Shown here: piece after piece, positions 1 to 21,311 of the stretch | Position numbering within the stretch: position 1 is the first letter of the stretch | How the letters are laid out: every line of letters starts with the position of its first letter | DNA from: Bugula neritina | Taxonomy: Eukaryota > Animalia > Bryozoa | Direction of reading: 5' to 3' | DNA length: 21,396 bases | Assembly: GCA_964035545.1 (NCBI GenBank) | Contig: CAXIUT010000034.1 | Coordinates: forward strand, 1 to 21,396 | Notes under the pieces: model-generated | Databases searched by the model: none | What the model was told of the DNA's origin: nothing | The model's input: the letters and a program-made list of their open reading frames with translations, nothing else | Made by a program: the position numbers and the translations under genes

Positions 1-696
1 TAACTTAATTAAGCATGCTAAGTTAAACTATGTGATATTCCTGATATGAAATATACTGCCAATGATCAGAACTAGCTCGGGTTGTAATCTCCAAGAGGTG
101 AACTTTGGGTTCGAGGACCTCATGTTTTTATGGGATATTATAAACAACCTGATAAAACAAGATAAACTATTACTGCTGATGGATGGGTCATGACTGGAGA
201 CGTTATTCAAATTATGCCCGTATCGAATGCATTCAAAATTATTGATAGAAAAAAAAATATTTTCAAACTTCAACAAGGATAATACATCGCTCCTGATAAA
301 GTAGAACAAGTCTATAAGAAATGTAATCTTATCAGTGATGCCTTCCTTCATGGATAAAGTATACAAAGCTTTTCAGTATTAATTGCCGTTCCCAATAAAC
401 CTTACTTTTAATCATTCGCACAAGCTAATAATATACCTGGAAGTTATTAATAACTTTGTCAAAATAAACAAATGAGAGGAATGGTTTTAAAAGAATTGAA
501 TGATTTGGCTAAAAGAGATGGACTTAACAGTTTAGAACAAGCCAAAAATATTTACTTCTAACCTGAAGGATTCGGCAATAAAAACATCATGACTAACACC
601 ATGAAAATGATCCGCCATGATGCTAAGAATTGTTATAAACCTCAAATCGATTCAATGTACTCTTAAGGAGACATCATGGCCAGCTTCAAGAAATGA
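1..696 (+). CDS. Long-chain-fatty-acid--CoA ligase (ACSL family), 5'-truncated by the window edge
   Basis: Frame 1 is open to TGA 694-696 with UAR=Glu. It reads CEVKLCDIPDMKY...PRGELWVRGPHVFMGYYK...DGWVMTGDV...IIDRKKNIFKLQQG(E=TAA 280-282)YIAPDKVE...GSYEELC, the C-terminal signature region of long-chain acyl-CoA synthetases. Confidence 0.93.
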
Positions 697-786
697 TATA
701 TCATCCATAAATAGTTATAAATAATTAAAATTATAGTCATTGATATCAAATCAGTCATTTATAAGTCATTAAATTCATAGAGATCA

Positions 787-3700
787 TCAATACCAACCAG
801 ATTAGCCCCACTCTTAACCACAATTTGGACACTTGCTACTAAAACTATTGGCAACAAACTGACAAAATGGACAAAAATATGAATTTTCAGGTTATTCTAC
901 TTTCATCTTTCTATCATTTACTGCATTATTGATATCATCGACCTCTGCAACTCCTGCAAATGCCTATTGAGCAGTTGGAAATTGATTTTAAAATTATTTT
1001 TTCTTTTATTGAGGTTGTTAAATATCCATCTCTTTACTTAACTTTTACTTCCGAAGGTTCAATATCCTTTTAATCTAACCTTATCCTACTTAACATATCA
1101 GAGATTTTTCAACATTATCGAAGTAGGGAAAATAAAATTAAAAGTATCCCTTTTATAAGTACAAAGTATAAGGAAAACCGCTTTTAAACTCAACTTTTAA
1201 CTTACTATTTGTTGTAAATTTCCATTAAATAATCCTACCTTGTTAGTTCTATTGTTAATCTATACCAACTATCACTCTGAACTCAGCCATAGCAAACTAT
1301 GACTCTTTTATATCAGTGACATTTTAAGGTATTTAATCTTTGAGGACAAAGTTTGTTGAAAAATCAAACGAAACAGGTGACCATTCACTATAAACTGGAA
1401 TAAATCCAACCAAATAAGGTTTGTTGTTAGCATTATGATGTTTCATTCTTTGCTAAGCATTTTATCCTGAATCAGATTCAACATTTTAAAATTTGTTAAT
1501 CATAGTAGCAATATCTTTAAGAGCACTTTACTTTTCTTATAAAGAAATATTTTGATGCATTTAGCTCGTTATCTTCAATGAATCATAGTTAAATTCAACT
1601 ATCCAGTCTGTATAGTTAGGATATGCTGGACATGGCCCTGGTAAATTTTAAATATAATGTGATATTGAAGGATTGATAGTCATCAACTTCAAAAGAGTGA
1701 TAATGCCTGTAAAAACAAAGTAATCTTGTTCTTTTCTGTTTGTATAAAGTAGTTAAAGGAAAGATAGGTAGATTTAATCTCCTTTTTTTTCAGATGAATT
1801 TTAATATCGACAATATCTATCATTTTGATTTTTGATAAGATACTATTCTCCTTCTTTTTAATATTTTTTCAATGCTAAAGGAACACCAAGCAACCTCTCA
1901 GTTCTTTATTTTTGAAGATAATCATCAATCATCAGCAATTGTTCCAAAATCTAAATAAAAATAAATGTACACTGACATAAATATAGATATATTATCTGTA
2001 TGATTGAATCTATTGATATTTTCCATGATATAGTTGATAATATTGTTCGTAAACTATGGATTATTTCTTGCACTAAAACTTATAATTAATGGTATCCTGT
2101 GATTGTCATATCTATCTCTAAACATCCTTCGATAGAATTAAAAGTTATTATAAGCTTTTCTTTGTAGTATAGCTTCTTCGCTATCAGGATTGACTTCTTG
2201 TTCAAATACTATCAACTCACATATTATCTATATAATCATCGAAACAGTGTTATGTTTCTGCATTGTATTTAGATAGAAAGGATAAGATGGAAACACTCCT
2301 TCAAGATGCGAATCACTTTGCATCAAAAGATGAATTAATCTTGGTCCAAATTTATTCACCTGAAACCATACTCCGAAACGCCTATCGATTTGAATCAACA
2401 TTTTAATCAGCTAAAAGAAATTAAACATCTTACTTGGATTCTTTCCCACTTACTACAAACCACTTAAGAATTTTTGAAGTAATTTTTGGATTATTTAGTT
2501 ATGAGGAAGAGGAAGCATGAAATTAGTACTAATACCACAACTAATAATCGATATCACTTTATACAAAATAGCTTTAGCAATGATTCTTACTTCTTGATCT
2601 CTGTGAATATAAATCATTTTGAATAGATTGCCTTATTTTTATTAAAGATACTAAACAGCCAATTGGTTGATAAAACTAGGTCTAAAATGACAGACATATA
2701 AGATAAATACTGATATTTTTTGAAGTTAAGAACTTTATTTACTACTTTTTTAATTATTATCTTGAATATCTCCATAATATTTTCCATCTAAATTAAGTTA
2801 TCTTCTTTGACATTCAAGTCTAAAATACCTAAAAATAACTTAAAAACTCATATCCAATTGCTATCTAATCTAATTAGGCAATCCCATAAAATTTTGATGA
2901 TAAGGTTTCATCAACTATAAAACATCTATGGTAAACTAACTAGGCATACTTATCCTATTAAGATTATCTTATAAAAATTTACTAAAAGATGGCTGCAAAA
3001 AAATCTTCTACTTCAACAAATCATAATTATCTCGATTAATCTCCTCCATAATAACCATATTACCCACCTTACTATCCAAACTCTCCTCCATATAATTCAA
3101 TTTCTCATAAATCAACATATAGGCATTATTTTTATCATTAGTTCCTTCACTCCAATTCCACCTATCAACTCGAGTATCATCAAATTTCATCCACCCCTAC
3201 TCACATTTAATCAATGAATAATAATGACCTCCCTATGAACTACCCACATGCACAACAAAACCCTTCAACTTGTATATCTATTTCTACGAACACTAATAAT
3301 TGAAATATTGTGATAGATTTAGTTCATTAGGAAATTAAATTGGATGGTCTAGCTTTATTTTATGCATAGACTATAGATCAAAAACCAAACGCTGAAGATG
3401 AATAAATAAAAAACGAGGCAATGAATTAAAACGATGGTATTTTTGGATCGTCTAAACCTTTGTATCACAAAAATCACAAAAATAGTCACAGATTATCTAA
3501 GTCTCAACAAATTTGTTTATACACTCTTAGATTGTCTTCAAGTTTTTTATTTCAACAGATAATATGTAAAATTATTACATCCTCTACTTTTTCTTAAAAC
3601 ATTTCTCACAGTTTATTATGTTCACCAAGGATCCCTTGAAGTTATTTGCCACCAAACTTTCATTATTAGTACCCTTCAGCCTCATCTATAACCTATCGAA

Positions 3701-6700
3701 TAATTGGTTCAAGAATTCATCAGCATCATGCTGCTATTTAGTATTGATAGGTTTGCCATTAAAATCAAGATAGTTAAGACAAAAATTTTAAGGAATAAGA
3801 TATATTCTTTGTCCATATGTCAACTGATAAAACATATATTGAAATTCTCTGAAAAAATCTACATTTTAATTAAGTTAGATAGCTATAATACCAGTTCTAA
3901 AAGGTATAATCATCTGTAGCTGCTGAATAACTGAATTAATGTAACATATGCAACCAAGATTAAACATACCCATTTTATTCTTACCCCTAACCACAGAATT
4001 TCTACTAAGTTTAAGATTGTCCATGATACTTGCCATGATCTTGAAATTAAAATCAAAAGGACAAATAGAATTACTCATATTATAAAGAATTTATCTGATC
4101 TATTCAGAAGAATTAGTCTCAAGAATAAATCTGATACTATTAATAGTGGATTCTTAGATGACTATAGAAGGGTTATATAGTTTTATATAATTGATAACTT
4201 TCAATTCTCCAAGTAGTATTTAGTCTGTCTCTTCAAAATGATTAATACTATTTTTGGAATATTATGATATATCTTTTTGAAATATTTTTGATATCTAAAA
4301 ATAGCGTTTATCATCTTATTAATAACTAAGAATTTTTGAAAGAACATTGAAGTATTCTTTACAATTTCTATACTTTGATTTTGAAGAATTATTTGTTATA
4401 TGAATTGAATAATATGATTCCTTAATACTTGGAACCACATTTGAAAGAAGTAAATAAAATGAGTTAAATATTGCCCTGATCTGATCATTCTAGTGGAATA
4501 TCATCTCATCAATAGTGTTAAATAATTTTATTGGCTGCTATTTTGATTGTCTCAAGATAAGATGAGCTACTATTGCTGTTGAATTTTATGCAATCCAGTT
4601 GTTTCCTTGAAGATTGTTGGTAGTTATAGCAAGATTGCATAATTTTTATATTATTTAAGTGAAAGATTATATTTTAGTGTTCTCAATAAAAGGTTAAATG
4701 TCAGCATGGCTAAGAGGACTAACATCTACATAGTTTATATTGAGTAAATTTGGTATTTTAGTCAGACTTTAACGTGATATCCTTCCCAAATTTTATAATA
4801 TAGTAATCAAAATATCATTTTTAAGATTAGAGAAGGACGTTCTTGTGAAGATCAACTCCAAAAATTGTATGTAAGCACTTTTAACAGAATATAAGTTGCT
4901 TGATTCCTTGAAACATACCTTCCATTTCTCATGATTATCCATTGGAATTTCATTAAAATAGATAGATTTCAAAAGAGTACTCAGATACCAATAATAAAGA
5001 TGGTTCCAATTTTCTTAAGAAAAGATTTATTCACTTTGTTCTTTGATAGCTTCTAATAATTTTTAATAGGTTGGTAATAAATTCAAAGTTTTGATAAGTT
5101 ATTCAGTAATTTTAGCTTTAATATTTTAATCTTTGCATGAGACAACTACATCTTTATATATTTTAAAGAAAATACCATAAATACCACCATCTTTAACTAT
5201 ATACTTTCTGAGTTAATGTTAACTTTTGAAAGATTATTCAAAACCTTTACTCTCTTAAAATAAACTTTGATAACCCAAATTGTTCAAGTTAGAAACAACC
5301 AAAGGAGAATTTTTCTGAGAAGATTGATAGTAGAAATTTAGCCATTACTAAAGAGAAAGATATTGTCCTGAACTACTATAAACACTAATTATTTATCTAA
5401 TTCTATAGTCATGGATTGATATTTCAGCTTGAATAGCTATTTTAAATATCTATGCAATATTTTAATTATAAAGTTTACCTTTTTATGCTGAAAATTTATA
5501 GTAAATCTCCTTCAAACAATCAGAAATTTCAGATCGAAACATACCATCTTTATCAAATAATTGACTCTTATCAAACCACTAGCAATCATTTGTTTAGTAA
5601 AGATCTACCGATATTTTCTTATAACCTGAAAAATTAGCAACTCTTTCCTTCATATCATTGAATTAAAGATATTTGTCTCCAAATTTTATCTTAGTTTTTT
5701 AAAAAGGTTGCTAAAAATGATTCAAAATCATACAAGTCACTTCGAATAAAGTATTATAACTTTTGACTTTTAGTTCATGCTAAGTTGTCTTATAATTTAG
5801 ATCATACCTGAAGACCTTTATCTATATTTAATAAGAATTATTCAGATATTGATAAGGTGGATAATCACCAAAACCTTTCTCATCTTCAGTTATCAATATT
5901 TATCTTGCCAAAATTAACCAACTAATAATGTTCAAAGGATCTCCATGACTTTATTCTAGCTATTCAATAACTTTTTTAAAAGTGATTTATTCTATTTTCA
6001 AAATTTATGGAGCTAAAGTATGTTTTGTGATGATATCTTGAGTTTGATAATATTATTTTGATATTAAAGGTTTGAGATTATTTCTTACATTAGGATTCAT
6101 AAGATGATATAAGTCTATAATACAATCTAAATCATGAGAACTTTTATGTTAATTATTTATCAAAGTAGAAATCATTGCTGTTTGTATTTATTCAGGATAG
6201 TATCTGATAAACTTAGCAAATTTATTATCTATTTTTATTAAATTCCAAAGTTATTTATGAGTAATAAGTTAATTATCCATTTATTAGTAACTTTATAATA
6301 GCAACATCAAGATCTTTAGATGCTTTTCTGTTTATTAAAGCTATAACTCATGAATTCTTTCTTATTTTATCAGTTTTCTTATCCCTTCATGAAGAGTTTT
6401 TCTACATTTGTTACCTATATTCTGATGATATGTCTTATCTCTCAGTTTAAAAATAAAATTCTATATCATCTGAAGATACAAAGAAGATTGAGGTTTTTTC
6501 ATCAGGAGTCTTAAAGGTGATAAAGCATTAGTATGATCATATACTCCTAGTTAAATTCCCATGATAAATATTTCATAGTAAAGAGTTATAGCTTATTTCT
6601 TGAGATTCTACCTTAGTTTTTCATAGTTTTTTTAGATTATAAGATATATTTTTTAAAGATTTTTTTATATTTAGTCAGGTGGAGTCAACAAAATAATTCT

Positions 6701-8044
6701 TTTTATCAATGAAAAAGTTTATTCATTGAAACAATTCGGTCTTGGAAGTTCTTAAATCTTTTGTAAAAGATAATTTCTATTCTTTTAAATATTATTTTCT
6801 TATAGTTTTTGAAGAGTATTAAAGAGTGATTTAGATAAATTTTAATGACATTTTTCAAGCAAATTAAAAATAAGATTGATTAAATAGTCATTAAGTGATT
6901 CATTTTTAGCCATGTATAGAAAGACTTACTCTCCTTTTGCAATTACTTCAGGATGATTATCAGCTCTAAATATTTAATCAAGAATCTTCTTATCTGCTAT
7001 AAATTATTTTATCTTTTATGTACTCACTGCAGAGGAAAAATAAACACTTTTACGACAAATTTATCCCAAAGTTTTAACTGCAAACAATTTCTTCTGAGAA
7101 ACTTCACTTTTCACAAATAAAATAATCAGTCTATTTTCTACCTACCAATGCCAAAGGTCCATATTAAATCCAGCATAGTCATTAAATCTTTAAGAAATAC
7201 TATTAACAGAAGCAGTTATACTTTAAAAATGACTTTTATTCAATAATTTTTAAACTTCCTTATGATCCAAAAGACTCAATATCTTCTATGAAACCTCTTT
7301 GATTATATTAAGCAAATAGAATGAATAAATTGGTGCATTTATATATTCTAGTAATTTTAGTAACTCAACTATGACATCCAAAGGTAGATTCATAAAGTGA
7401 GAGATAAAGTAGTTTTAAAATATCTCAGTAATAATTATTTAGGTTGCATTCATAAAAGTTTATGAAATACTTTATCTTTTTACTACCTTAAATGAGTTTG
7501 ATAAAAATTTAGCTATTATTTCATTATCAGCTGTAAAATATTATTTTGCCTATCCATGTTTCTTCTGATCAATCACATCACTCATAGCATCTTGATTGTA
7601 GTTAGCTATAATTGGAGGAGCTGCAGGACCAAAATAAGGAAGTTGCTAGGAACTTTAATCAGGTCCTGAATAAGGCAAAGCGATTGCTTCATTGCTATTA
7701 GTAGTTTTAATATTTTCTGAGGATTGTAAAAGATCTAAATTTTGTTGATTTTTAGCTTAGAACTTAATATCAGGATTGATAGCAGTTTTTATAAGTGTTA
7801 CCAACTCTGTCATTGGAACTTATTTGAACATACCACAAAGTAGTTTAACTATTCCTAGTATATAATCGGCTGAATCTGATTGTTTTGAGAGAATTGTAAT
7901 GTTTTATTAGATGACTTTCATGTTTTCTTTGATAGTTTTTGAGGTTTAAACTTTCTTGAGACGATCAACGAAGGCTTAGTAATCAATTTTCTTGGAGTTG
8001 TTCTAGGATGGTAGTAGAAAAATAGGAAACGATTCTTACTTCAT
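787..8044 (-). CDS. Large ubiquitin-specific protease (USP9X/USP24/USP34-like, peptidase C19), ~2411 aa, one 22-nt intron (1951-1972), C-terminal C4 zinc finger
   Basis: ATG at 8044. I read the frame by hand and found no in-frame TGA until the intron 1972-1951 (GTGTAC...TTTAG), whose removal restores ILEQLLMIDDYLQKERTERLLGVP. Motifs: Cys box GMFNLGCICYINSVIQQL, PINTKEQHDADEF (cf. USP9X NLREQHDALEF), EFPNELNL, His box VHVGSSEGGHYYSLIK, WMKFDD, NAYMLIYEK. Stop TGA 789-787 is followed by a second TGA. Confidence 0.92.
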
Positions 8045-8104
8045 ATCTTGAACTATTGTATAAAGAATTTATCAATATATATTAATGTTGATAATTATAA
8101 AACT
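8045..8104. promoter_or_regulatory. 60-bp divergent (bidirectional) promoter region
   Basis: An AT-rich spacer lies between head-to-head ATGs of the USP gene (8044, -) and the ESRP-like gene (8105, +). Positional inference. Confidence 0.55.
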
Positions 8105-9312
8105 ATGGATTATTTTCTGATCTTTCAATATGACTGCCTCTAATAATCCAAAGAAGGACTCCAACTTTCATCCATATAAGTCGAACTAGTCAACATCAAT
8201 GCAGATTAATTTGACCCTCAAAGCAAATTATCGTTTGCTAATTTAACTTAAGGACAATCTTTTGAAGAGTCTATCACTGCTATAACAAAGCTAATCAATA
8301 AATTAGTCCTCAATTTCACTAATGTGCAATTGATCGCATAGAATAATGACCTTTTTACTAATATTCTACCTCAATAGTTCAGTCAGAGAAAATTATCAAT
8401 GCCCTTTTATTTTACAAACTACGTCGATTGGCGGGTTCTTTGCCGCTAAAAGTTTGGAGTTGTTGCTCAGTCATTGCCTGAAATCGCCAAGTAGAAATTT
8501 AATGACAAAGACAACTTGAAATGATGGAGATCAATAACCACTTTAGCACGTTAAAAGCTATCCTAAAACGACTCAAAAATGAAGGATATCTTGAAGATAC
8601 AGACATACTATTTTCAAGGAAGCATAAAAGAACCAAATTGACAGAAAAATATTCATACTTTCGATGTTTGGGATTGCCTTTTCAAATATCGAAATCTTAA
8701 ATTGTAGAAAAGTTAATCGAACCAGAACGCTTCAACATCAAATCTTATGGACTAAGTTTGATAATATAGCATGGAAAGTTTTCAGGTAAAGCTGTTCTCT
8801 AAATTCCTGCAGCATTTACTGAAACCATTTTAAAGAAGCATCGAATGTTCATCGGGAAAAGATACATCTAGATCATCCAAGTCAGCCAGGAAGAGTACGA
8901 AAGCTACAAGTTGAAAGAAGAGAGATAGAAAGAGAATCATAGCCGGGATCCTTTTTCAAGAGGCGAAAGAAGAAAGAGAAGTCAATCAAGTTCGTCACCA
9001 TCTTATTCGCGGTCAAGGAGCCGAGAAGGGATCCAGGTTCACAGTTTGTTGAACGAGGTTGCAGTCAAAGTTCGTGGCCTTCCTTTTTCTTTGAATAACT
9101 GGGACATTGAGTAAATATTTAAACGATTCAATTTTATAAGGGGAAGTGTAAAATTGGGGTTTATGGGGGAGCGGAAAACAGGTTAGGCTGTTATATTATT
9201 TCCCAATCGTGATTAAGCCTAACGTGCCCTTTCTCTCCAAGGCTTAACTGTCCAAAGACGCTACCTCGAACTTAAGATAACTAGTAAAGACAATTATGAT
9301 CGTTTTAGATGA
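8105..9312 (+). CDS. ESRP/Fusilli-like RNA-binding protein: degenerate DEDDh-exonuclease-like N-terminus, two quasi-RRMs and an RS-rich linker, ~395 aa, intron 8491-8510
   Basis: ATG 8105; the 20-nt intron GTAGAAATTTAATGACAAAG removes the frameshift; TGA 9310-9312. qRRM1: FRCLGLPFQISKSEI...GKFSGKAVL...KHRMFIGKRYIE. qRRM2: VKVRGLPFSLNNWDIEEIF...RKTGEAVILF...RRYLEL. These are hnRNP F/H / ESRP / GRSF1-type motifs. Linker: RKRSQSSSSPSYSRSRSR. Confidence 0.8.
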
Positions 9313-9352
9313 TTCCATTATAATTTTGCATTAAGTTTATTGTTCTTAAAAG

Positions 9353-10720
9353 ATGGCTCTTTAACTAATCATTCAGTAGATCAAGGCTATTGGCAACTTA
9401 AAAGTCAAAAAAATAACTACTAACGAGGATTCATAGGAAGTAATTGATGAAGAAAGAAGGTTTCGAGTGAAGATTGGGACTTAACAATTCATATCGAAAT
9501 AGTGTGGAACATTTCTAAGTTCAAATCAAATTTTATTCAATGAACCATTCTCCTATTTATACGACAACATCTCACACTTACTTTTCATATAAATCTTCAA
9601 TAAACATCAATACTTAGATAATTCAGATTTAGACCAAGTACTCAATACTGAAATCGATCTATCAGATCTAACTAGTCTTAATGGAGATTACATTGAAACA
9701 ACTTTATTCGATATCAAAAGAGAAGCTGTTGGCAAGTTAATTTTATCAATCTAAACATTTAAAAAAGGACCTAAATATCATTAGAAAGTAAGCAGTAAAA
9801 TATTTTTCGAGGCAGTAAAGGAAGAATACGATCGTGTTCAGGCAAGCTAAGCATCAAAAAATATAAAAAATTTAATGGTAAATAATACTTTAGCTGATAC
9901 ACTAATGACAATAAGTAGTTTAACATTGATCTGTTAGAAAGAAGATATGTAGATATTTATGCGTGAAGGATTCGTGATGGTGAAATATGGTTTAACAATA
10001 AAAGCATTTAGTTCTTTAATAAAAATTCAAAGCAAATAAAATGCTAATTGGATGGATTATATGTAATTTATGAAAAATGATGGAGTCAAATTCTAATTTT
10101 TCTTTTTCCATTTTGATTAACTTGGCAATGTAACCTGCAAAGCTAAAGGATAAATCAAATATGTCATATTTGATTAAACAATTAATCTACACACTATAAC
10201 TCTATTTGATAAAAGGTCAAATAAGTATGGAGTATTGATGGTTAAATTCAATGAAAAAGAAGTCACTACTAAAGGAGCTATCAATAATAAATTTGATAAG
10301 AAACTTGCTCCTATAGAACCAGCTATTCCAGAGATCATTGAATAATTCAATAGATATAAATTTTAAAGTAAACATAATAATCATATTTTGTCATAGAAGA
10401 TGTGGGAATTGTAACAGCAAGAAAAAGCTCAACAATAGTAAAAAGAAAGACCATTAAATCCATAATAAAAAAAGAAAAAAGAAGAACATTCAAGATTTAT
10501 CAACTTTTTACAAAAATAAATGATAAGAATTTAAAGATAAATAGCAAAAAAATAACTTCATGGTAAAAAAGATGATAGAAAAAGTATGCTTTTACCTACA
10601 ATTGATAAAAAAGGAACAGATTCAAGAGTTGTAGAACAAAAAGGATAACGCTATAATCGTAAAATGAACAGCTCTTTTTCTACAAATTAAATGCCAAAAG
10701 TTAAATTACCTAAAGTATGA
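9353..10720 (+). CDS. Putative tandem C2-domain protein with a charged C-terminal tail, 455 aa, intronless
   Basis: Open frame from ATG 9353 to TGA 10718-10720. The beta-strand pattern is typical of C2 domains: LELIIQEIKA...FRVKIGTEQFISK...LFNEPFSY...LFIEIFNK...TEIDLSDL...LFDIKREAVGKLILSI. It recurs as GFVMVKYG...W...ITLFDKRSNKYGVLMVKF. The ORF is solid; the domain call is by eye. Confidence 0.65.
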
Positions 10721-10738
10721 TCTCTAAAAATATTTATA

Positions 10739-11566
10739 TCATCTTAAATTATCATCCATTAAATTTGTATCTTCAGGCTGTGAAGGACAACATTTTTACT
10801 TGATTTTTGTATAACCCAAATGAGGAAGCGACCATACATAATCAGCATAGTATATGATGTATTCAGAACTATGGAAACTTAGCATTCCGAAAAGAAAACC
10901 TCCGATTATATCGATGCTATAGTGAGTTCTCGATGCAACAAGCATCACCACCATCCAGAATATTTGGAACCAACAATATATTTTGACACAAAGATGTAGG
11001 TTTAGTTTAAGAGCTTAGAGAAGAAAGATGGTGGCTATTCCTGTATGACCAGAGAAATAGAAGTCTCTTGTGTGATCATAGGGTACCATAATTGAAGGAA
11101 ATGGTGGAGCTCTCCAGGCCATATTTTACGGAAAAGGAAAAACAAAAATATTCTTTATTAGTTGATATGTACAAGAGAAAAGGTTCTAAACACAAAAAAG
11201 AAGAGTGATGACATTGCAAGTCTGATATTATTTACTTTAAGCATCCTTAATATTGACTTATTTACCAGTAAATCATACCAGCTATTAGAGAAAAATCCAT
11301 AAACTACTGGCCAACCAAAGTTATTATCGAGATCTTATCATAGTACATAAAACGATTAATCGGGTATAGTAGCTAGTGAAAGAAGTCATATATGCAAGGT
11401 TTGGTCAGATCCATTCTGAAGATGATGCGATAGAGGAAGAAGCCAGCAGTTACTAAGAAGATAGGAATAAGTTTTAAGAAATATCCGTGTATCTGAGTGT
11501 ACCTTCTGAGTAGAGAACAAATTACTAAGTTGAAATTGAAGCTATTTTTTATAATGAACTTTGCAT
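10739..11566 (-). CDS. Sphingomyelin synthase-like / PAP2-superfamily multi-pass membrane protein, ~255 aa, three 20-nt introns (11506-11525, 11246-11265, 11153-11172)
   Basis: The spliced translation contains PFPENMAWRAPPFPSIMVPYDHTRDFYFSGHTG and VASRTHYSIDIIGG, the SMS/LPP catalytic motifs (D..FSGH, R.HY..D), plus several hydrophobic helices. ATG 11566, TGA 10741-10739. Confidence 0.85.
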
Positions 11567-12074
11567 CGGAGTTTTGATTTTTTTGAATTTACACGATTAT
11601 AATATTGGTTTATTTACTTTTATTCAAAAGAATAAATATAAATTAAACTCTTAAAAGATAGTTACATAAAAGAAAATCTTTCATTAATGATCCTGAAGAC
11701 TAAAAGAATGCTTTAGGTCAAAATATAAGAAAAATAAAATTAAATTTGGAAAAATAAGTATCAATAAATCTCTAAAATTATTGAAAAATATGATAGTTAA
11801 TCAATAGTAAGTTAAAAAATAGGACAACCTTTTTATTCCTCAATAATTTAATGATGATGCTAACATAAAATACTAAAAATGTTTTGACTATCACTAAATT
11901 TATTATCAAAAAAATATGAAGTTAGCAATCACTTTTTCAAAAAAGAAAGTTATCAGATAAGAAAAGAACTTGTCCTTTATCATTCTCTATCTTTTTAATA
12001 TCATATTCAAAGAAAAAAATCGAACAAAAAGAGAGAATTCATGTAAATAATAATTTATTAATATTATATTTCTA

Positions 12075-13928
12075 TCATTTTCTATTTCTTTCAAGAATTC
12101 CATGAATATTGGAATATTCTGCTTCTTTAATTTCCCAAAGATGAATAACTGAAGGATTAATATGCATTAACTTTTGTTTTAACTTTCGATTTTATTGCTA
12201 GATCATTCCATAATTCGAAGATTGATCTCTTAAATTAGCAGACATATCTCTCAATACAGCATTTTCTTTCATTTGTCTCTCTATCTAGGATCTCAAAAAT
12301 ACATTTTATTCTTTCATAGTCTTCAATTAATGCTCATATCGACTATAGTTCAGTTGAGCAGCTGATTGAACTTCACCTATCTTAGCTTCAGTTTTGGCAT
12401 CATTTTTTATCAAAATAGTATCTTTTTATTGAACTATTTGTTTATATTTTTGTAATTATTACATCAAATGTAATTTTTAATTTACTTATTTTTGAAATAG
12501 TTGCTATTTACTTCCTATCTTTTATTAATAATTTCTACTTTCCATTTTGATAGACTAAACTTGAAGTTTAAATCCTTCTATCATAAATTTTAAACCATCA
12601 TTTTATTTTCTTAACTCAGAATTTATTGCCATTATCTAATCTAATTACCCTCTCAATAACTTAAGTCCTACTTCCTGAGAAGGAGGAGTTTGAACTGATG
12701 TTTCTCCTAACTTTTTAACAAGTAAACTCAACTAATGCTTTTAATGCCTAATTCTATCCATTTATTTCTTTAATTACTATATCATTTTAGTATATTATTT
12801 CAATTAAACAATATTACTTTTTCTTTAATTTAACACTTTTATCTGATTTTAATAATCTTTTAACTTCCCCTAAATACCATTCATATAATTTTGCATTAAT
12901 ATTTTATCTTATTTCAATTGATTATTTTCAACTCTCAAATCAGCTATACTTCTCTTAACTACCTAAGATTCCACCATATCACTTTACAGGTTTTTTAATT
13001 AATCAACATAAGAAAAACTATCAGGCATTTTTTAAATCTCATCAAATGATTCTTTTACATTTTTTTGTGAAGATTCAATAAATCTAAGTATTTTAGAAAA
13101 TGATTTTTGAATCTATTACTATGTATCAAGATCATTTATTGTTATCTTTGTTCGCATCTTCAAGTTGCTATAGACTTTTTCATGATGGGTTGATAATTTT
13201 TTTATTTAGACTATTAAACTATCATATGGTAAGTTTAATTTCGAATGAGAAAGAGCTATAGGATTTTCACTCAATCCTTTTTGCATACTTGATTTCTATT
13301 TATTAACTTCTTCGTATTTTAGTCGATAATTTTATTTTTAAGATAACAACTATCTGATTTTCTGCTGAAGTTGTTGAATTTAATGATTAAGCTTTTTTAT
13401 TTATTAATTCTTTTTGTTTTTCTATTGTTGAAATTGCATGTTCATTCCTTTCACTACTTCTTCACCATGTAGATGTTGATTTGCGCGCGCTTACTGAGCA
13501 ACAAAATTGACTTTCTGTAAAAGAACATTTCTCTCACTCACTAGTTGCATTTAACTGTTACGTCTGACTTATAACTCCTGTTCTAGAACTTTTATTTTTT
13601 GATCTTGAAATACAAGTTTTTAATTAGATCTTTCTTTATCTTTTTACATCACCTTTCTCATTTTATTTAGTTCAGCTATTTTTTCAAGATTGACATTAGT
13701 AATATTTTTGATATAAGGTATATTCGCTTCTATATTTTAACTCATCTGTCTGAGTTAAGTTTGAGTTAAATTTGATGTTTATGCTTCATTTCTCAAAACT
13801 TTAAGTACCTAAAGCTGAGTCAGTTTAATTTTTTCAAGAGCATGTTTCAACTATGAAGTTGATTTCTTTTATTGTTTTTGTGGTATATGAGGCTAGCTTG
13901 AAAATGAATTGTTGTAAATAATACTCAT
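12075..13928 (-). CDS. Uncharacterised coiled-coil protein, 617 aa, intronless
   Basis: ATG 13928 to TGA 12077-12075, with no in-frame TGA seen. Composition is E/K/Q/L-rich and heptad-like (e.g. QDQKIKVLEQELEVRRNSEMQLVSERNVLLQK). No family recognised. Confidence 0.8.
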
Positions 13929-13951
13929 ATCTTAATAATACAACAATTTAA

Positions 13952-15784
13952 TCATTCGTATAGTATCCTTTTGATTCTTTCCACATTGTTAATTGCTGTC
14001 TTCTCAATGTTCATTTCTACTGCTTTTCCCACTAAAGAATGCTTCAAGCCTCCCTAGCTATCTTTCTTTGTACATATTCTCAATTTGTACTGTCCATACA
14101 ATCTCTTCTCAGCTTCTTCTCTCAAAAGATCCTCACTATAATGACTTAGATCTTAAATTGGAATTCCTTTGAATATTTCTTGAACAAACTCATCGAATGC
14201 TGTGGTCCATATTGATCCCGTAATATCTGATAATTCAATAGGAAGAATAAATTTTCTATGAGTTTTATCGTTATAATGACCACAGTGCATACACTTACTG
14301 AACTCATCTGTTCCTTTTTTGCATTTAGGATTGTTACAAGCTTAATAAAACCATTTACCCTTAAAACTAGTATGACTGAGCCACACTTCAAGGTCAGAAT
14401 AAATAGGATCCACATCAATAAAGCTCACTTCAGTTTATAATTATCTTATATTCTTTCCATACTTCTCTTTCCCATTAGTTGCGATCTCTTTGACGCTGTA
14501 GAAAGGTGAATAGTCATTTTCTGTTAGTTTATTTTAATAAGCTGAAAAAGGATGATTTGGGTGAGGTTTTATTTCTGACTTGAAGAGTGAATTGATAGAA
14601 CGTGTGTCTCTATAATCATTAACTTTAAAACTTTTGAGTTTAACTGTTTTATTGATCCAACTTTCTTCAATAACCATTTCTTTATTCCAAATAACAACTT
14701 CAATTGACTTTTTAATTTCAGGATCACCAATAATAAGAGCCTTCTTATAGATTGTTCTGCTATCTTTATCAAAACTTCTTTCTTATCCAATGCTAAGTAA
14801 AATTCCTACAATATCAAATTGTCTATCCAAATTCCAGGTATCATTAAGAATATCAACAAAGGACACATATGAATCTTTTGTATCTCTAGGAATAAGAGGA
14901 GTATCTTTAAGAGGAATAAATTGAGTATTTTTTGTAAAACTGATATTATATTTAGAATATTTCTATCCTCTATTCTGATTGTAACTTTCTTCTCTGATCT
15001 GTCCTCTTGATATTCTATAAATACCATAAACATGTATTATTTCATGATAGTCTTTAGCACAATCTCCAAACATAACTCCATCGATCTTCATCCCAGTTCT
15101 ATCTATCATAGTCATTGAAAATATCTTTGTTAGCTTTCCTGATTTACTGTTAAACTCTCTGTAAGATTTTTAAAGAACACGGACAACTATCTACCAAGCA
15201 CTTATGTCTGTAAACAAATCAGATATTTTATCAAAATTTTTAAGTTGATTTCCATCTAAAGATGATGGACTATTATCTTCACTCTAAACTTCAAGTTCCA
15301 TCATATCACCAGAGTTATAAACAGGCATTTTTTGAGTTGAATTTTGATAGTTGACAGGCTGAATAGCTTTATTTTTATTATAAGATATTTCCCTTTTATC
15401 AGTCATCATTTTATCTTTCTCCTAGAATTTAACTTCTTTCTTGGGAATACTAGCAGTTAGATCACTGTTAGAACGAGGATAAGATAGAGGTTTATAACTT
15501 AAGATCTCAATAAAGATTTTACTCGATTTGGTATGGGTTGTAAAAGAGTCTATTTCTATAAGGTATTTGTCCTAAGAGGGATGCTTTTGAGCATGTTTTC
15601 TGATGTCCATTTCTGGTTTATCGAGATCGATAATTCCTTTAGCTTTATCCTTTCCATCACTAATCTCTAGCTTGATAGCTTCATTGACATTTTTGAAATT
15701 GAAGACTTCAACAATGTACTTTTCATGATTACCACTTTTTTGTGATTGCATGTCTGCGATAGCGTTTTAGGTGCAAAGAGTCAT
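13952..15784 (-). CDS. RPA1: Replication protein A large subunit (RPA1/RFA1 family), 610 aa
   Basis: ATG 15784, TGA 13954-13952. N-terminal OB: IKLEISDG. DBD-A: ISDL...WEIVVRV...KIFSMTMIDRTG.KIDGVMFG...GIYRISRG. DBD-B: FDIVGIL...IGD...SIEVVIW. DBD-C with Zn ribbon: WFYEACNNPKCKK...KCMHCG...IELSDITGSIWTTAFDE. Orthology to RFA1 versus a ciliate paralog is not resolved. Confidence 0.88.
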
Positions 15785-15881
15785 TTAAGATAAATATTAT
15801 GAGCGGGATAAACCTTATAAACTATATAATAGACCGCTTTCATCGACTTTAAATATCATATTTCATATTCAATTTAAATCA

Positions 15882-16700
15882 TCAATCATTTTTCAACTCT
15901 TACTTTCCCTCTTTTCCCTTCAAATAACAATATTAACTATATTATGACTGATATACTTCTTTAGTTTGGATGAAATATTGATATACCTAAAAATAAAAAA
16001 TGACGACACCAATATAACTATTGACAACGTCAAATAAATATAAGATTACAAGTCGACCCACTTGAGGACTGGGTAGATTGGTCGATTGCATAGAGTATAG
16101 ACTAAATTATTTTAATAATACTTGCATTCATTGATGAGTAAAGAACAACTTAGCATATTACAATGAATATTCTCTATTTTTTGAAGCAGTATTTATTGAA
16201 ATAGAAATCAATTCCCAAGAGGACTAGAGGAACAACATGCAATAAGGCAAATAAAAAGAGTATTCCAGCTATATATCTTATAAAATACGTGGTTGTATTT
16301 TTCTATCTAGATCAAAAAGTAATCCCCAGTATAGAAGAGTTATAGGTACTGATAGACTAAAAGCTAATTCAAATATCACTTCAATCCAATATTTAAAATA
16401 ACATTTCCTTTTTTTTTAATTATTCTATGAGATTTTGAAGAGATCGTCTTGACAAATTAATCCAAAATATAACCAAGCTAGTTTAAGATCATGTAAGGTT
16501 AGATATTTAATCAGGATAAATATCGTTGGAGAGATTATAAGTTAGATAAAAACTAATATAGAAAGGATAACGAAGCTTATCCATCGAGTTAGTTTTAGTT
16601 TTTTTCTAGAACAGCATTGATCTCTTGATTCATGAATATCTCCAAGTTAGCTAGAATCGAAAAAATAGTTCCATAAGTTGTTCGAAGATGATCTTCTCAT
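15882..16700 (-). CDS. Multi-pass membrane protein, FAR-17a/AIG1/Rolling-stone-like, tandem paralog B, ~252 aa, three 20-nt introns (16269-16288, 16102-16121, 15937-15956)
   Basis: Spliced translation: MRRSSSNNLWNYFFDSSELGDIHESRDQCCSR...KYLTLH...IFELAFSLSVPITLLYW...LLHVVPLVLLGIDFYFN...YTLCNRPIYPVLKW. It is collinear with paralog A and shares three intron positions and phases. Ends TGA TGA. Confidence 0.8.
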
Positions 16701-16792
16701 TTAATATTTTATATTTAAAAATATCAATACTAATACATACTATAAAGAAAGATCGAATAAAAAATTAATACTATTTCATCAAAATGATTTTA

Positions 16793-17607
16793 TCAACTAT
16801 CAACTTAGTCCTAAATAACATCATGACCTGAAAACTATCTTAATAATAATAATAAAATACCTATTTAAACAATAATTAGAAGTAACAAACCTTAGAACAA
16901 GAAAAGTTACTATTACAATAGTATAGATAACAATAGCATAGATAAAAGAAATACTGTCATTCCATTTCAAAATAGGATAAATAGGCTACACTTTCAAAGT
17001 ATAAACTAAATAGATAAATTAGTACTGAAATTTATAAAGAGATAAGCTGCTCCAAATACAATAATAATCAATAATCTTGGCAACTTAAAAGTAAATCGAT
17101 TGAAAATCAAATCAATAAAGAGAAATATAATAGGAACAGAATGTTCTAAAATAAAAAGAATGAGATAAGCAGCTGAAATAAGAATTGATTACTTTTCAAT
17201 CTTTTCACATCATATGAAAACAACAAAAACCAATAAACTAAAGTAATAGGAACAGCAAAAGTGATTGCCATTTAGTAAAATAGTTCAACCCAATATTTAA
17301 GACTATTTTATCAACATTTTTACTTTAAACAAATACGCCCATTTTCAAATTTACTAAGAATAAAATCAAAAACAGCCAATCCAAAATACATCCAAGCAAG
17401 ATATAGTCCATGATGAGTCAGATATTCAACCACAACAAAAAAAGATTTGCTGATCACCACCTGCCAAAAATAAACTGCACTGATTAGCAACCATCCTATC
17501 AACCGAAACACCCATAATACGTTTCTAGAACAGCATTCAGTTCGAGGTTAGTGAATGTCTCCAAGTTACTTGCCAGAAAAGAAGTATTCCCACATCGATT
17601 GAATCAT
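16793..17607 (-). CDS. Multi-pass membrane protein, FAR-17a/AIG1/Rolling-stone-like, tandem paralog A, ~243 aa, four introns (17303-17323, 17173-17192, 17006-17025, 16839-16860)
   Basis: Spliced translation: MIQSMWEYFFSGKELGDIHEPRTECCSR...EYLTHHG...FYEMAITFAVPITLVYW...LEHSVPIIFLFIDLIFN...YTLKVEPIYPILKW. The YLT / VYW / H..P....D / PIYP.L.W pattern is typical of this superfamily. Confidence 0.8.
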
Positions 17608-17641
17608 TTTAAAATAATTCTTTAATAATAAATCAAACACA

Positions 17642-18072
17642 TCATCTATTACCAACATCTCCCAGTCCTCGAATTCTTCTTGCCAACTGCATATCTTTGC
17701 TCATTAGAGTTACTCTCTTAGCATGAAGAGAACAGAGATAAGAATCTTCGAAAAGACCAACCATGTAATTTTAGGCACTAACTTGAAGAGCCTCCATTCC
17801 AAAGAAGTCCAACGCTTCTTATCTTCAAGAATATCAGTACAAATCTCTTTCACTAGTTTGTGGAAAGTTGATTTTGGCATGAGAAGATCAGTTGAATTTT
17901 GAAGGCGTTTGATATGAGCTAAATGTGCATTTCTATTCTTCATTTTTTGTTGAAAAACAAATGGATTTTGACGCGCTTAGTGCTTCATTATCTATTTCTT
18001 GTTTGAAGTCGGTTTTAAAGGATTGAAACGTGGAACTCCGATACTCTTTCTTGAACCGCCCTTCTTATCCAT
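17642..18072 (-). CDS. Centromeric histone H3 variant (CenH3/CENP-A-like), ~143 aa, with a 1-nt frameshift at 17801-17803 (sequence error, pseudogene or recoding)
   Basis: ATG 18072, then a divergent basic tail and [41 protein letters not shown] second frame continues [45 protein letters not shown] to TGA 17644-17642. CenH3 hallmarks: H3 Q68 replaced (FHKL), RF->RW, loop 1 one residue longer, FEDTN->FEDSY. Confidence 0.82.
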
Positions 18073-18383
18073 TTTAATTTAAATTATCAGTTGTTTTGTC
18101 ATTCAAGTCAAATTAGTCAAAATATCACAAATCAAAAATATTCATAAATAAAATCCTTTGATGCTCTTTGAACTTTAATATCATCGTCAACTGATTTAGC
18201 AATAAATATTAAGATATTTAAAAGGAAAGTAATGCTAGCTAAATTTAATCAAAATGTTTATCACAGAGTTTAAATCTTAGATAAAATTAGAGAATATTTC
18301 AAGTCTTGTTTTCAATAGACTCATAATTCACATAGTTTCTTACATTAGAATAATTTAATAATAGATAATTAAAATCATACAAA

Positions 18384-19898
18384 ATGAATCTTATTACAAT
18401 CTTGCTAATCTTCACTTCCCTTCTTTTCACTCATTCTATCAGAGTCGATCCTTAAAACTCACTCTTCGTAGATCAATACAACAGATATAGCATCTTCCAT
18501 GGAGTCAATGCTGTCTACAAAACACATCCTTTTCATCCTAACCTAGTAGAATTCTCAACGAACAGCAGTCTGACCGACCATGATCTTTTGAACCTTAAAA
18601 ACTGGGGCATGAATGCCATCAGACTACACGCTGCCTGGTAAGGAGTTGAGCCTTAAAGAGGAGTTTATAATTATACATATGTAGAAACATTAAGATAAAT
18701 AGTCCAAAAATGCAATAAATTTGGTATCTCAGTCATTCTCGATGCCCATCAAGATTTGTTTACAAAGCAGTTTTGTGGTTAAGGATTACCTGTTTGGGTT
18801 GCTAAAAGATAAACATTTCCAGCACCTCTTAAAGTCAAACTCAGATATGACTAAAAGGGATTTCCTCTTATCGAAGACTGTCTTAAAATATAATTTGCTG
18901 AATACTATCTTACATATGATCTCATGAAATTCCAAAAAGATCTATTTTCAAATTAAAGAGGACTTCTCGATCATCTCTGTAAATTTTGGGAACTTATTAC
19001 AGCCTATGTAGGTAGTGAGCCCAACCTCATTGGATATTAATTTATCAACTAACCAATAGGAGCAGATGCTTATGTCAATCCAGGTGATACAATTCTTCCT
19101 GGAGAATCTAATAGTAAATATTTGTTACCAGCTTATAAAAGAATTTTACAATCTATAAGAAAACTTGATAAAAAGACTCCTATTTTCTTTGAACCAAGTG
19201 TTATCGATGTTTTTGGGGGAGGATTTGTAGATACTCCTGGAGGAAATGATCAACTATAAACTCAAGTTTTCAGTTATCATGTCTACTGCCCACTAGTGAC
19301 TAAACTTGGAGAACCTGTATCTACCAAAGTATGTCAAGCATTTGATGCTCTTGAAGTAGCTTCTAAATAACAAAATGTAAATTCAATGAAGATAGGTGGT
19401 TTTTTGACAGAATTTGGTGCTCTTTCAAACAGCATCAAAAGTGCAGAATAAATAACAACAATAACTGACTTCACAGAAATGCATTTTAGAAGTTGGACTT
19501 ATTGGCAATTTAAATACTACAATGATATCACAACTGCTGCTCGACCTGGGACTACCTAATCTTTTTACGATGAGTATGGAAATCTTCAAAGTAATAAAGT
19601 TAAAGCTCTTGCCAGACCTTATGCATATTCTATTTGTGGAATTCCAATAAGTTAGTCTTTCAAAAAAGGAGTATTTACTCTTAAATGGGTTGCTAGTGAT
19701 GATTGTTATAACAAAAAGACTTAACTCTTTATGAGCGACTCTTTCTATTATCCAGCTGGCATGAATGTAAAATTTACAAAAAATTGTGAAAATTGTTCAG
19801 TTAAACTACTAAAAGGATAATAATTAAATTTCTATGAAGTACATTTGAGTTCTAAATCACTGGGAAAGACTATATCAGTAACAATATCTCCAAAATGA
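18384..19898 (+). CDS. Secreted/lysosomal glycoside hydrolase family 5, endoglycoceramidase-like, 504 aa, intronless
   Basis: Signal-peptide-like MNLITILLIFTSLLFTHS, then FHGVNAVYK, WGMNAIRL..AWEGVEPERGVYNYTY and ILDAHQD...FCGEGLP. The acid/base motif is GYEFINEP (Glu=TAA 19050-19052). Further motifs: FFEP, SYHVYC, nucleophile FLTEFGA, SWTYWQFK, LARPYA. TGA 19896-19898. Confidence 0.93.
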
Positions 19899-19919
19899 TA
19901 ATGATATAAATCATAAGAA

Positions 19920-21069
19920 TCAATTTTACTAAATCATTTTATCTTCTTGAATATCAAGAACAAGCTATCCTTCTTCTTCCTCTTCAAGGCACATCTTTTC
20001 CTCTTTACTCTTATCAAAAGAAAAACCTAAATAAAATCATAATATACCTTCATAAGCCTTACCTTCCTCAGACTTAAGCGAAGCATCATTGTAGGATTAT
20101 ACCTAACATTGTGTAAATTCAGGATCAAAATTTGATACATCAGAATATGATTTAACAAGAGGAATAAATGGAGCTTTCAATTTTTTATTTTATAAAGCTG
20201 TCCAATTTATACTTTAAAACCATGGATGATTTTTTATTTCAGTTGACCCATTTTTACTGCCAAGGCGATTATCAGGTTTTTTCTGGAATAGCCCTTCAAG
20301 AAGATTTCTCAATTTATGGCTAACATAGGGAGGAATATTAGGATTACTAAATTTGATTTTATCGAAAAGTTAAGGTCGACTTTTGGAATAGAAAGGAGGC
20401 AAACCTACAACCATTTCATAGATCAAAGAACCAAGACACCACCAATCAACTGGTTTACCATGTCCTTGTTTATATAAAATCTAAGGTGCCAAGTATTCAG
20501 GAGTTCCGCAAACAGAATAAGCATTGCTATCTGCAACTTCCATTTTTGAAAGTCCAAAATCAGTTAGTCTGAGATACCCTGCCTCATCAATCAGAATGTT
20601 TTCAGGTTTTAAACTATATTATCAAAAATTTACTCTCGATAAATAATATCTCTGCCATGTAGATATTAGATAGCTAGAATGATTTGAGCTGCATAAAATT
20701 TGGTTCTGACTAAGGGTATAAGTACTGTTATTCTGAGAGTCTTTGCTTTTTCGAGAGAAGACCAAAAAGTTATCCACCTGGGCAGTATTCAAGAATGAAG
20801 AAAAGTTTTTTTTAATTTTGGAAAGAGTTGTAAAGTTTAACAATGAAAGGATGATTCATACCAACAAGGATGTTACGTTCTGTCATCACATGATTTTATT
20901 GTTTTCTTTTTTATATGTATTTTTTCTTGAGAATCTTCATAGCATAAACTTTATCTGAGTCTTCTCCTTTCTTCTTGACGAGGACCACCTTAGCATAAGA
21001 ACCTTTGCCAATAACAGAGAGAAGGTTAAATTTATCAAGAGTTAACAGCTGCTGACTGGTGATTTACAT
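19920..21069 (-). CDS. AGC-group Ser/Thr protein kinase (Akt/SGK/S6K-like catalytic core, no PH domain), ~362 aa, introns 20706-20725, 20614-20633, 20027-20047
   Basis: [51 protein letters not shown] (split by an intron), [19 protein letters not shown] (last E=TAG 20483-20481), [19 protein letters not shown] and hydrophobic motif YEGFSF. TGA 19922-19920. Confidence 0.95.
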
Positions 21070-21311
21070 CGGTAAAATAAATAATAGAATGGACTAGCAT
21101 AGAGATTGTCATTTATAGTCAAACTATATATTGAACTGAATATTTATTTTCATAGGAAATCATATTGATTTGAATATGGTATAATAATTAGAGTATTTTA
21201 GTTTCAATAAGACATATTTTAATCATTAAACTCATATTTATGATAATTAAAACTATTAATTTCAAAAACATTTATTTTCAATTGATAGTTGATAGTTTTA
21301 AATCATAACAT
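21070..21311. promoter_or_regulatory. AT-rich subtelomeric spacer holding the promoter/5'UTR of the AGC kinase gene
   Basis: 242 bp lie between the kinase ATG and the first telomeric repeat, and no other gene is evident. The promoter assignment is positional inference. Confidence 0.55.

Follow-up and report, generated by a model that had tools for sequence, protein, structure and literature searches.

Strong preference for T after the UGA stop codon in a macronuclear chromosome fragment with the peritrich genetic code and in its metagenomic relatives

We have analysed the gene ends of a 21.4 kb stretch of DNA (contig CAXIUT010000034.1, positions 1 to 21,396, listed under Bugula neritina; referred to throughout as the window), which has a GC content of 28% and contains 12 genes ending in TGA, by examining the base that immediately follows the stop codon (position +4) in the window and in related contigs recovered from metagenomes. 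T occupies +4 at every one of the window stops and at 36 of the 41 stops curated in the window and relatives combined.

Results

Gene ends and genetic code of the window

The window is the terminal part of a macronuclear chromosome from a ciliate with the peritrich code, which reads UAA and UAG as Glu and leaves UGA as the sole stop. Its gene ends and the telomere repeats are as follows; labels beginning with L denote contigs of related organisms and D an organism joined from four of them, all described below.

694-697, plus strand: TGA-T stop of an acyl-CoA synthetase gene (open reading frame, ORF, 1-696; the 5' end of the gene lies outside the window)
786-789, minus strand: TGA-T stop of a large USP (ubiquitin hydrolase) gene, with a UCH Pfam match
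9310-9313, plus strand: TGA-T stop of gene 3 (terminal ORF 8506-9312, 268 codons)
10718-10721, plus strand: TGA-T stop of gene 4, a conserved gene
10738-10741, minus strand: TGA-T stop of a PAP2-family gene, with a PAP2_C Pfam match
12074-12077, minus strand: TGA-T stop of a 642-codon coiled-coil gene (L004/L023 ortholog ends TGAT)
13951-13954, minus strand: TGA-T stop of RPA1, with a Rep_fac-A_C Pfam match (L004/L023 ortholog ends TGAT)
15881-15884, minus strand: TGA-T stop (reading TGATGA) of membrane-protein gene 8, which holds only if 15937-15956 is spliced
16792-16795, minus strand: TGA-T stop of gene 9, a paralog of gene 8, which holds only if 16839-16860 is spliced
17641-17644, minus strand: TGA-T stop of a histone H3-like gene, with an in-frame backup TGA-T three codons downstream
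19896-19899, plus strand: TGA-T stop of a GH5-like glycosidase gene, with an in-frame backup TGA-T two codons downstream
19919-19922, minus strand: TGA-T stop of an AGC kinase gene, with an in-frame backup TGA-T three codons downstream
21311-21396, plus strand: G4T2 telomere repeats, marking the end of the macronuclear chromosome

When re-read on its own strand, each of the 12 coordinates gives TGAT, as the initial annotation had stated, and its rough chance estimate of ~1e-5 agrees with the p ~2e-5 obtained here for 12/12 at a background of 0.40. Ten of these stops are solid, closing terminal ORFs 60-642 codons long that are backed by Pfam matches or orthologs, and yield p ~1e-4 by themselves. 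Pfam analysis of stop-free pieces of the window confirmed UCH, PAP2_C, Rep_fac-A_C, Pkinase and Histone, the last match reaching the end of its profile 8 residues before the stop of the H3-like gene. The RRM-type domain initially assigned to gene 3 was unconfirmed by Pfam on the piece tested, and a homologous-protein search with a fragment of RPA1 gave no match. The acyl-CoA synthetase ORF has an ortholog in L001 that is 60% identical and likewise ends TGAT, as do the orthologs of gene 4 in L001 and L004 (62-69% identity) and those of the H3-like gene in L001 and L023. USP orthologs are present in L001, L006, L008 and L018, and the window USP stop itself reads TGATGA, an in-frame backup immediately adjoining it. 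Gene 4 and the PAP2-family gene are convergent with stops 18 nt apart (10721-10738), and the AGC kinase stop lies 21 nt from that of the GH5-like gene (19899-19919); spacing this close leaves room only for tiny 3' untranslated regions (UTRs), unless these extend into the neighbouring gene.

Long ORFs appear in the window only when TGA is taken as the sole stop. In agreement with NCBI table 30, the invariant Glu is encoded by TAA in the GH5 NEP motif (19050-19052) and by TAG in the kinase APE motif. In alignments with orthologs, which were themselves scored with UAR (UAA and UAG) as Glu, the top partner of TAA is Glu at 233 positions, followed by Asp at 74, and the top partner of TAG is again Glu, at 85 positions, followed by Asp at 25. 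The code first proposed from the sequence, with UAR as Glu, is thus correct. UGA is not a regular sense codon, again as in table 30: USP ORFs of >2,000 codons in the window, L001, D and L009 contain no in-frame TGA in any context, long partial USP ORFs on four more contigs are likewise free of it, and the in-frame TGAs of the window sit inside 21-nt introns. No in-frame UGA read as sense was found.

Introns bearing on the window stops

Window introns are 20-22 nt long and of the form GTA...TAG/AAG, for example 1951-1972 in the USP gene and 8491-8510 in gene 3. Four of them bear on the stops or on TGA context.

15937-15956, minus strand: putative 20-nt terminal intron of gene 8 (GTATATCAGTCATAATATAG), from paralog comparison
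16839-16860, minus strand: putative 22-nt terminal intron of gene 9, from paralog comparison
17303-17323, minus strand: 21-nt (3n) intron of gene 9 with an in-frame TGA-T
20027-20047, minus strand: 21-nt (3n) intron of the kinase gene with an in-frame TGA-T

With its terminal intron retained, gene 8 would end in TGA-A at 15920-15922 and gene 9 in TGA-T at 16821-16823. The two introns are likely genuine and were accepted because they occupy the identical residue position and phase in the paralogs and because the predicted spliced tails are similar, each continuing with Glu and then an aromatic residue (...KLKNEYCYL... and ...CLNREFSGH...). Genes 8 and 9 (15882-16775 and 16793-17610, minus strand) are tandem paralogous genes for multi-pass membrane proteins and share intron positions. 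TGAT is present in both 3n introns, as first reported, and direct reading of the sequence shows that splicing out the one in the kinase gene restores YEGFSF, which resembles an AGC hydrophobic motif. Because TAG also serves as a sense codon, length histograms of GTA..TAG segments gave no peak from which introns could be recognised, and coding potential based on codon usage was too weak for delimiting exons.

Recurrence of the +4 bias in relatives

Relatives were found by a metagenome scan with a piece of the USP Cys-box, which returned 22 loci. L001-L009 and L018 are UGA-only contigs that are syntenic with the window and in which UAR is mostly aligned with Glu. Organism D comprises L027, L023, L006 and L033, joined by contig walking into ~42 kb with a C4A2 telomere cap, and L037 and L038 are further relatives reached by a representative search with a fragment of the D GTPase; two scans of viral contigs gave no match. 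Gene ends in the relatives were curated by orthology, Pfam matches of called fragments and ORF length. T is found at +4 in 4/4 curated stops in L001, 13/17 in D, 2/2 in L037, 3/3 in L038, 1/1 in L008, 1/1 in L018 and 0/1 in L009, giving 24 of 29 stops outside the window from at least six organisms (p=6e-7 against a background of 0.37; 1e-5 against 0.43). The +4 bias is conserved across species while orthologous 3' UTRs cannot be aligned past this base, and the shared T is therefore maintained by selection and not inherited.

Background frequencies and position specificity

The bias at true stops exceeds the frequency of T after TGA elsewhere. T follows 421 of the 1044 TGAs on both strands of the window (0.403), TGAs that end ORFs of <150 codons in the window and relatives (n=4,894) at a frequency of 0.366, and out-of-frame TGAs within confident coding regions at 0.31-0.37; across these classes the range is 0.31-0.40, against 36/41 at true stops, as would be found with an extended stop signal. 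The initial annotation had proposed tabulating +4 against the 3' UTR background, and for the curated stops to which this tabulation is confined the 36/41 compares with a T content of 0.41-0.43 in the first 30-60 nt after stops, +4 excluded. Among positions -6 to +15, +4 alone is conserved and no wider motif was detected.

An internal control is provided by a frame break in the USP gene (787-8071 in the window) that occurs at the same place in all species and is explained in the window by the 22-nt intron 1951-1972. The TGA closing the unspliced frame is followed by A, A, C, G and C in the relatives and by T in the window, resembling background, and homology shows this break to be read-through of an intron and no true stop. 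In an uncurated test, 17 of 26 ORFs of at least 400 codons end in TGAT (p=0.003 against 0.366), and five of the nine non-T ends in this set are the conserved USP frame break.

Exceptions at conserved gene ends

The C-terminus of USP is orthologous in five organisms, ending ...MM* in L001, D and L008. The stop is TGA-T in the window, L001, L008 and L018 and TGA-A in D. The GTPase of D also ends in TGA-A, with a TGA-T backup three codons on, while its orthologs in L037 and L038 end in TGA-T. An obligatory four-base stop is contradicted by these two D genes and is uncontradicted within the 12 genes of the window. Thus, of the initial suggestion that UGAU is needed or strongly preferred, the preference is borne out by the stops outside the window and the need is not. 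The other non-T stops, TGA-G in a GBP-like gene of D, TGA-C in an FHA-RING gene of D and TGA-G in L009, are without ortholog support and may be mis-calls.

Two further candidates were discarded. A TGA-A stop for the D helicase at L023:7735 was rejected when the L037 ortholog revealed a 20-nt intron, placing the stop at a TGATGA at L023:7923, and L038:3412 was rejected as an in-frame sense UGA as the frame changes through introns.

In-frame backup stops

A backup TGA lies in frame within three codons of the stop in 11/41 genes, and 8 of the 11 are themselves TGAT. Tandem stops are enriched in a frame-specific manner: of the TGAs in the first 9 nt after the stop, 11 are in frame and 4 are not (p=0.002). 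The immediate tandem TGATGA occurs at 6/41 stops, ~4 times the rate predicted by composition. The frame awareness of these backups points to selection acting through the ribosome, against readthrough, over selection on RNA processing.

Discussion

Selection on termination as the source of the bias

UGA is the leakiest stop codon. We consider that the +4 U bias results from selection on termination which, in a lineage with no other stop, favours the tightest of the UGA tetranucleotides, a reading to which we assign a probability of roughly 0.7. The bias is confined to a single position, recurs across species and is accompanied by backups that keep to the reading frame; that termination efficiency is its cause, and which tRNAs would compete with eRF1, we infer from other systems. 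In yeast, readthrough follows the order UGA-C > A > G > U and the preference for near-cognate tRNAs depends on +4, with C impairing eRF1 sampling, UGA-A favouring Trp-tRNA, UGA-G and UGA-C favouring Cys-tRNA and UGA-U favouring none (Beznoskova et al. 2016, PMC4748822). In mammalian cells UGAU provides a strong termination context (Cridge et al. 2018, PMC5829715), and in both E. coli and yeast readthrough is reduced when U stands at +4 (Wei and Xia 2016, PMC5289835). The premise of the initial annotation, that termination is strongest with a purine at +4, therefore fails for UGA, and as UGA-U is tightest in yeast and strong in mammalian cells, no special eRF1 requirement is needed to explain the bias. 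By analogy with yeast, +4 C in these ciliates would weaken sampling by eRF1, A would favour misreading by Trp-tRNA, G and C would favour Cys-tRNA, and U would give the least readthrough. With every protein having to end on UGA, the lineage would drive +4 to U and would keep in-frame backup UGAs just downstream. Leaky termination at UGA is known from ciliates (PMC6879139; PMC10553269), and the dense backups agree with it.

Relation to known systems

Extended stop signals are a known class, and the present bias is one of them; its strength and its lineage are new. As in the yeast UGA-N hierarchy, where C is the worst base (PMC4748822; PMC5829715), +4 appears to modulate termination, but the genomic +4 bias of yeast and mammals is modest, whereas here U follows ~85-100% of stops, with both purines depleted as well as C. 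The over-representation of +4U in bacteria is similarly associated with reduced readthrough and competition from near-cognate tRNAs, although it concerns RF1/RF2 and mainly highly expressed genes ending in UAA (PMC5289835), in contrast to eukaryotic eRF1 and UGA only in the present case. C is avoided at +4 after UGA in Oligohymenophorea sp. PL0344, Paramecium and Tetrahymena (PMC10553269, citing Salim et al. 2008), which resemble the organisms studied here in having UGA as sole stop and scarce +4 C (1/41 here); depletion of C alone was reported in those species, whereas U approaches fixation in ours. Tandem UGA stops are enriched in UGA-only ciliates, in ~11.5-12.3% of genes within six codons (PMC6879139; PMC10553269). 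The same excess of in-frame UGA just past the primary stop is seen here, at 27% (11/41) within three codons in a small sample. In Condylostoma and Parduczia, UGA doubles as a sense codon, and the choice between stop and sense depends on where the codon lies relative to the poly(A) tail (Swart et al. 2016, PMC4967479); there too termination needs more than the triplet, but in our organisms the cue is the adjacent base and no in-frame sense UGA was found. As the initial annotation had supposed, a literature search turned up no description of enriched UGA-U in any ciliate, peritrichs and those with UAR as Glu included. A search with the D GTPase fragment and cluster look-ups for comparators from Tetrahymena and Paramecium yielded no identifiable genome of a ciliate with UAR as Gln; specificity of the U bias to the peritrich code is therefore judged from the literature alone, namely the avoidance of C.

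Evidence that weighs against selection on termination

Several results tell against this interpretation. Out-of-frame TGAs in the first 60 nt of the UTR are followed by T in 23/37 cases, and part of the +4 signal could be a word bias of the UTRs; the initial annotation had named equal TGAT enrichment throughout UTRs among the observations that would undo its proposal. With the immediate TGATGA cases set aside, in-frame and out-of-frame backups number 5 and 4, a marginal difference (p=0.05). The stops were curated from ORFs and orthology, and one curated stop, that of the D helicase, proved wrong and was corrected by its ortholog. UGA-only pressure elsewhere in ciliates has apparently given no equally strong U bias (PMC10553269), and the yeast tRNA rules may fail to transfer to ciliates.

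Alternative explanations

A stronger form of the termination hypothesis, in which UGA-U is an effective four-base stop codon in the species of the window and UGA-A, UGA-G and UGA-C are read through at biologically meaningful rates, is unlikely. If it were true, +4 would be part of the code, readthrough might be effected by, for example, a near-cognate suppressor tRNA-Glu(UUA), Trp-tRNA or Cys-tRNA, and the 12/12 result, the TGAT in the 3n introns and the dense backups would all be explained.

TGAT could alternatively belong to a signal that, within very short 3' UTRs, serves 3'-end formation or mRNA stability; the initial annotation had also offered 3'-end processing. The narrow spacing of the convergent stops and the frequency of TGAT among out-of-frame UTR TGAs would suit such a signal, as would the recurrence of TGATTTA within 15 nt of three window stops. 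We regard it as improbable, given that only the base abutting the stop codon is fixed, with neither an extended motif nor variable spacing, that the downstream TGAs are mostly in frame, which RNA processing does not need, and that the TGAs of both 3n introns are also TGAT while lying far from any 3' end.

Similarly poor prospects attach to the proposal that +4 U arises as a side effect of selection for immediate tandem stops (TGA TGA) or of avoiding GAA and GAG (Glu) in the +1 frame. Frameshifting is reportedly prevalent in peritrichs, to go by the title of one paper cited in PMC12411067. The excess of TGATGA over composition would be expected under this proposal, but 30 of the 36 TGAT stops are not TGATGA, +4 U stays near 85% in the present small set when tandem-stop genes are removed, and TGAC, which would also avoid a +1 Glu codon, is found at 1/41.

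A peritrich eRF1 with an altered decoding pocket that truly needs UGA-U, other UGA-N being read through or decoded as sense, is more doubtful still. A special requirement of this kind is possible, as a deletion in the GTS motif has been reported for the eRF1 of the peritrich Carchesium (PMC10089648), and it would account for the 12/12 in the window, but it is opposed by the conserved TGA-A stops of D, by the USP ORFs without in-frame TGA in four organisms and on four further contigs, and by the confinement of in-frame TGAs in the window to 21-nt introns.

Chance combined with a biased choice among alternative gene models is very improbable, for although two of the 12 window stops depend on putative introns, introns of ~20 nt offer many alternative gene ends and the D helicase stop was initially wrong, the ten robust stops, the 29 stops of other organisms and the uncurated ORF-length test all repeat the pattern, and correction of the helicase moved its stop from non-T to T.

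Implications

Selection on termination, if it is the cause, has turned what is usually a weak statistical context bias into something near a rule, in a eukaryotic clade left with only the leakiest stop. As a natural system, these organisms make it possible to ask to what extent +4 can offset a weak stop, and allow the generality of the yeast UGA-N rules, i.e. eRF1 sampling against near-cognate Trp- and Cys-tRNAs, to be tested. TGA-T together with a nearby in-frame TGA also aids the calling of true gene ends in peritrich genomes, in which gene models are ambiguous because of ~20-nt introns and a single stop; the TGA-T rule flagged the D helicase mis-call, which was then corrected by its ortholog.

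Additional observations

Although their proteins are only 40-70% identical to those of the window, organism D keeps its gene order RPA1, coiled-coil gene, gene 4 and USP, and L001 its order H3-like gene, gene 4, USP and acyl-CoA synthetase. Organism D is present in dozens of JGI, ENA and Logan assemblies. L009 is the one relative without any TGA-T stop. On its minus strand, an in-frame TGA-A at L009:4878-4880 separates a 205-codon zinc-finger-like ORF from a 290-codon ORF; the ORFs could belong to two genes that abut, or the TGA could lie in an unrecognised 3n intron or be recoded.

A search of sequencing runs found no RNA run that contains the window. Four DNA runs matching the window derive from the same or near-identical strains, ~1% different over the compared region (13930-19929); their contigs yielded neither poly(A) sites nor splice junctions and have no comparative power. 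A Logan contig of run X2 departs from the window past ~14411, inside the RPA1 gene, and runs into C4A2 telomere-like repeats; the chromosome could have an alternative fragmentation site here, or the contig could be a chimera of the assembly.

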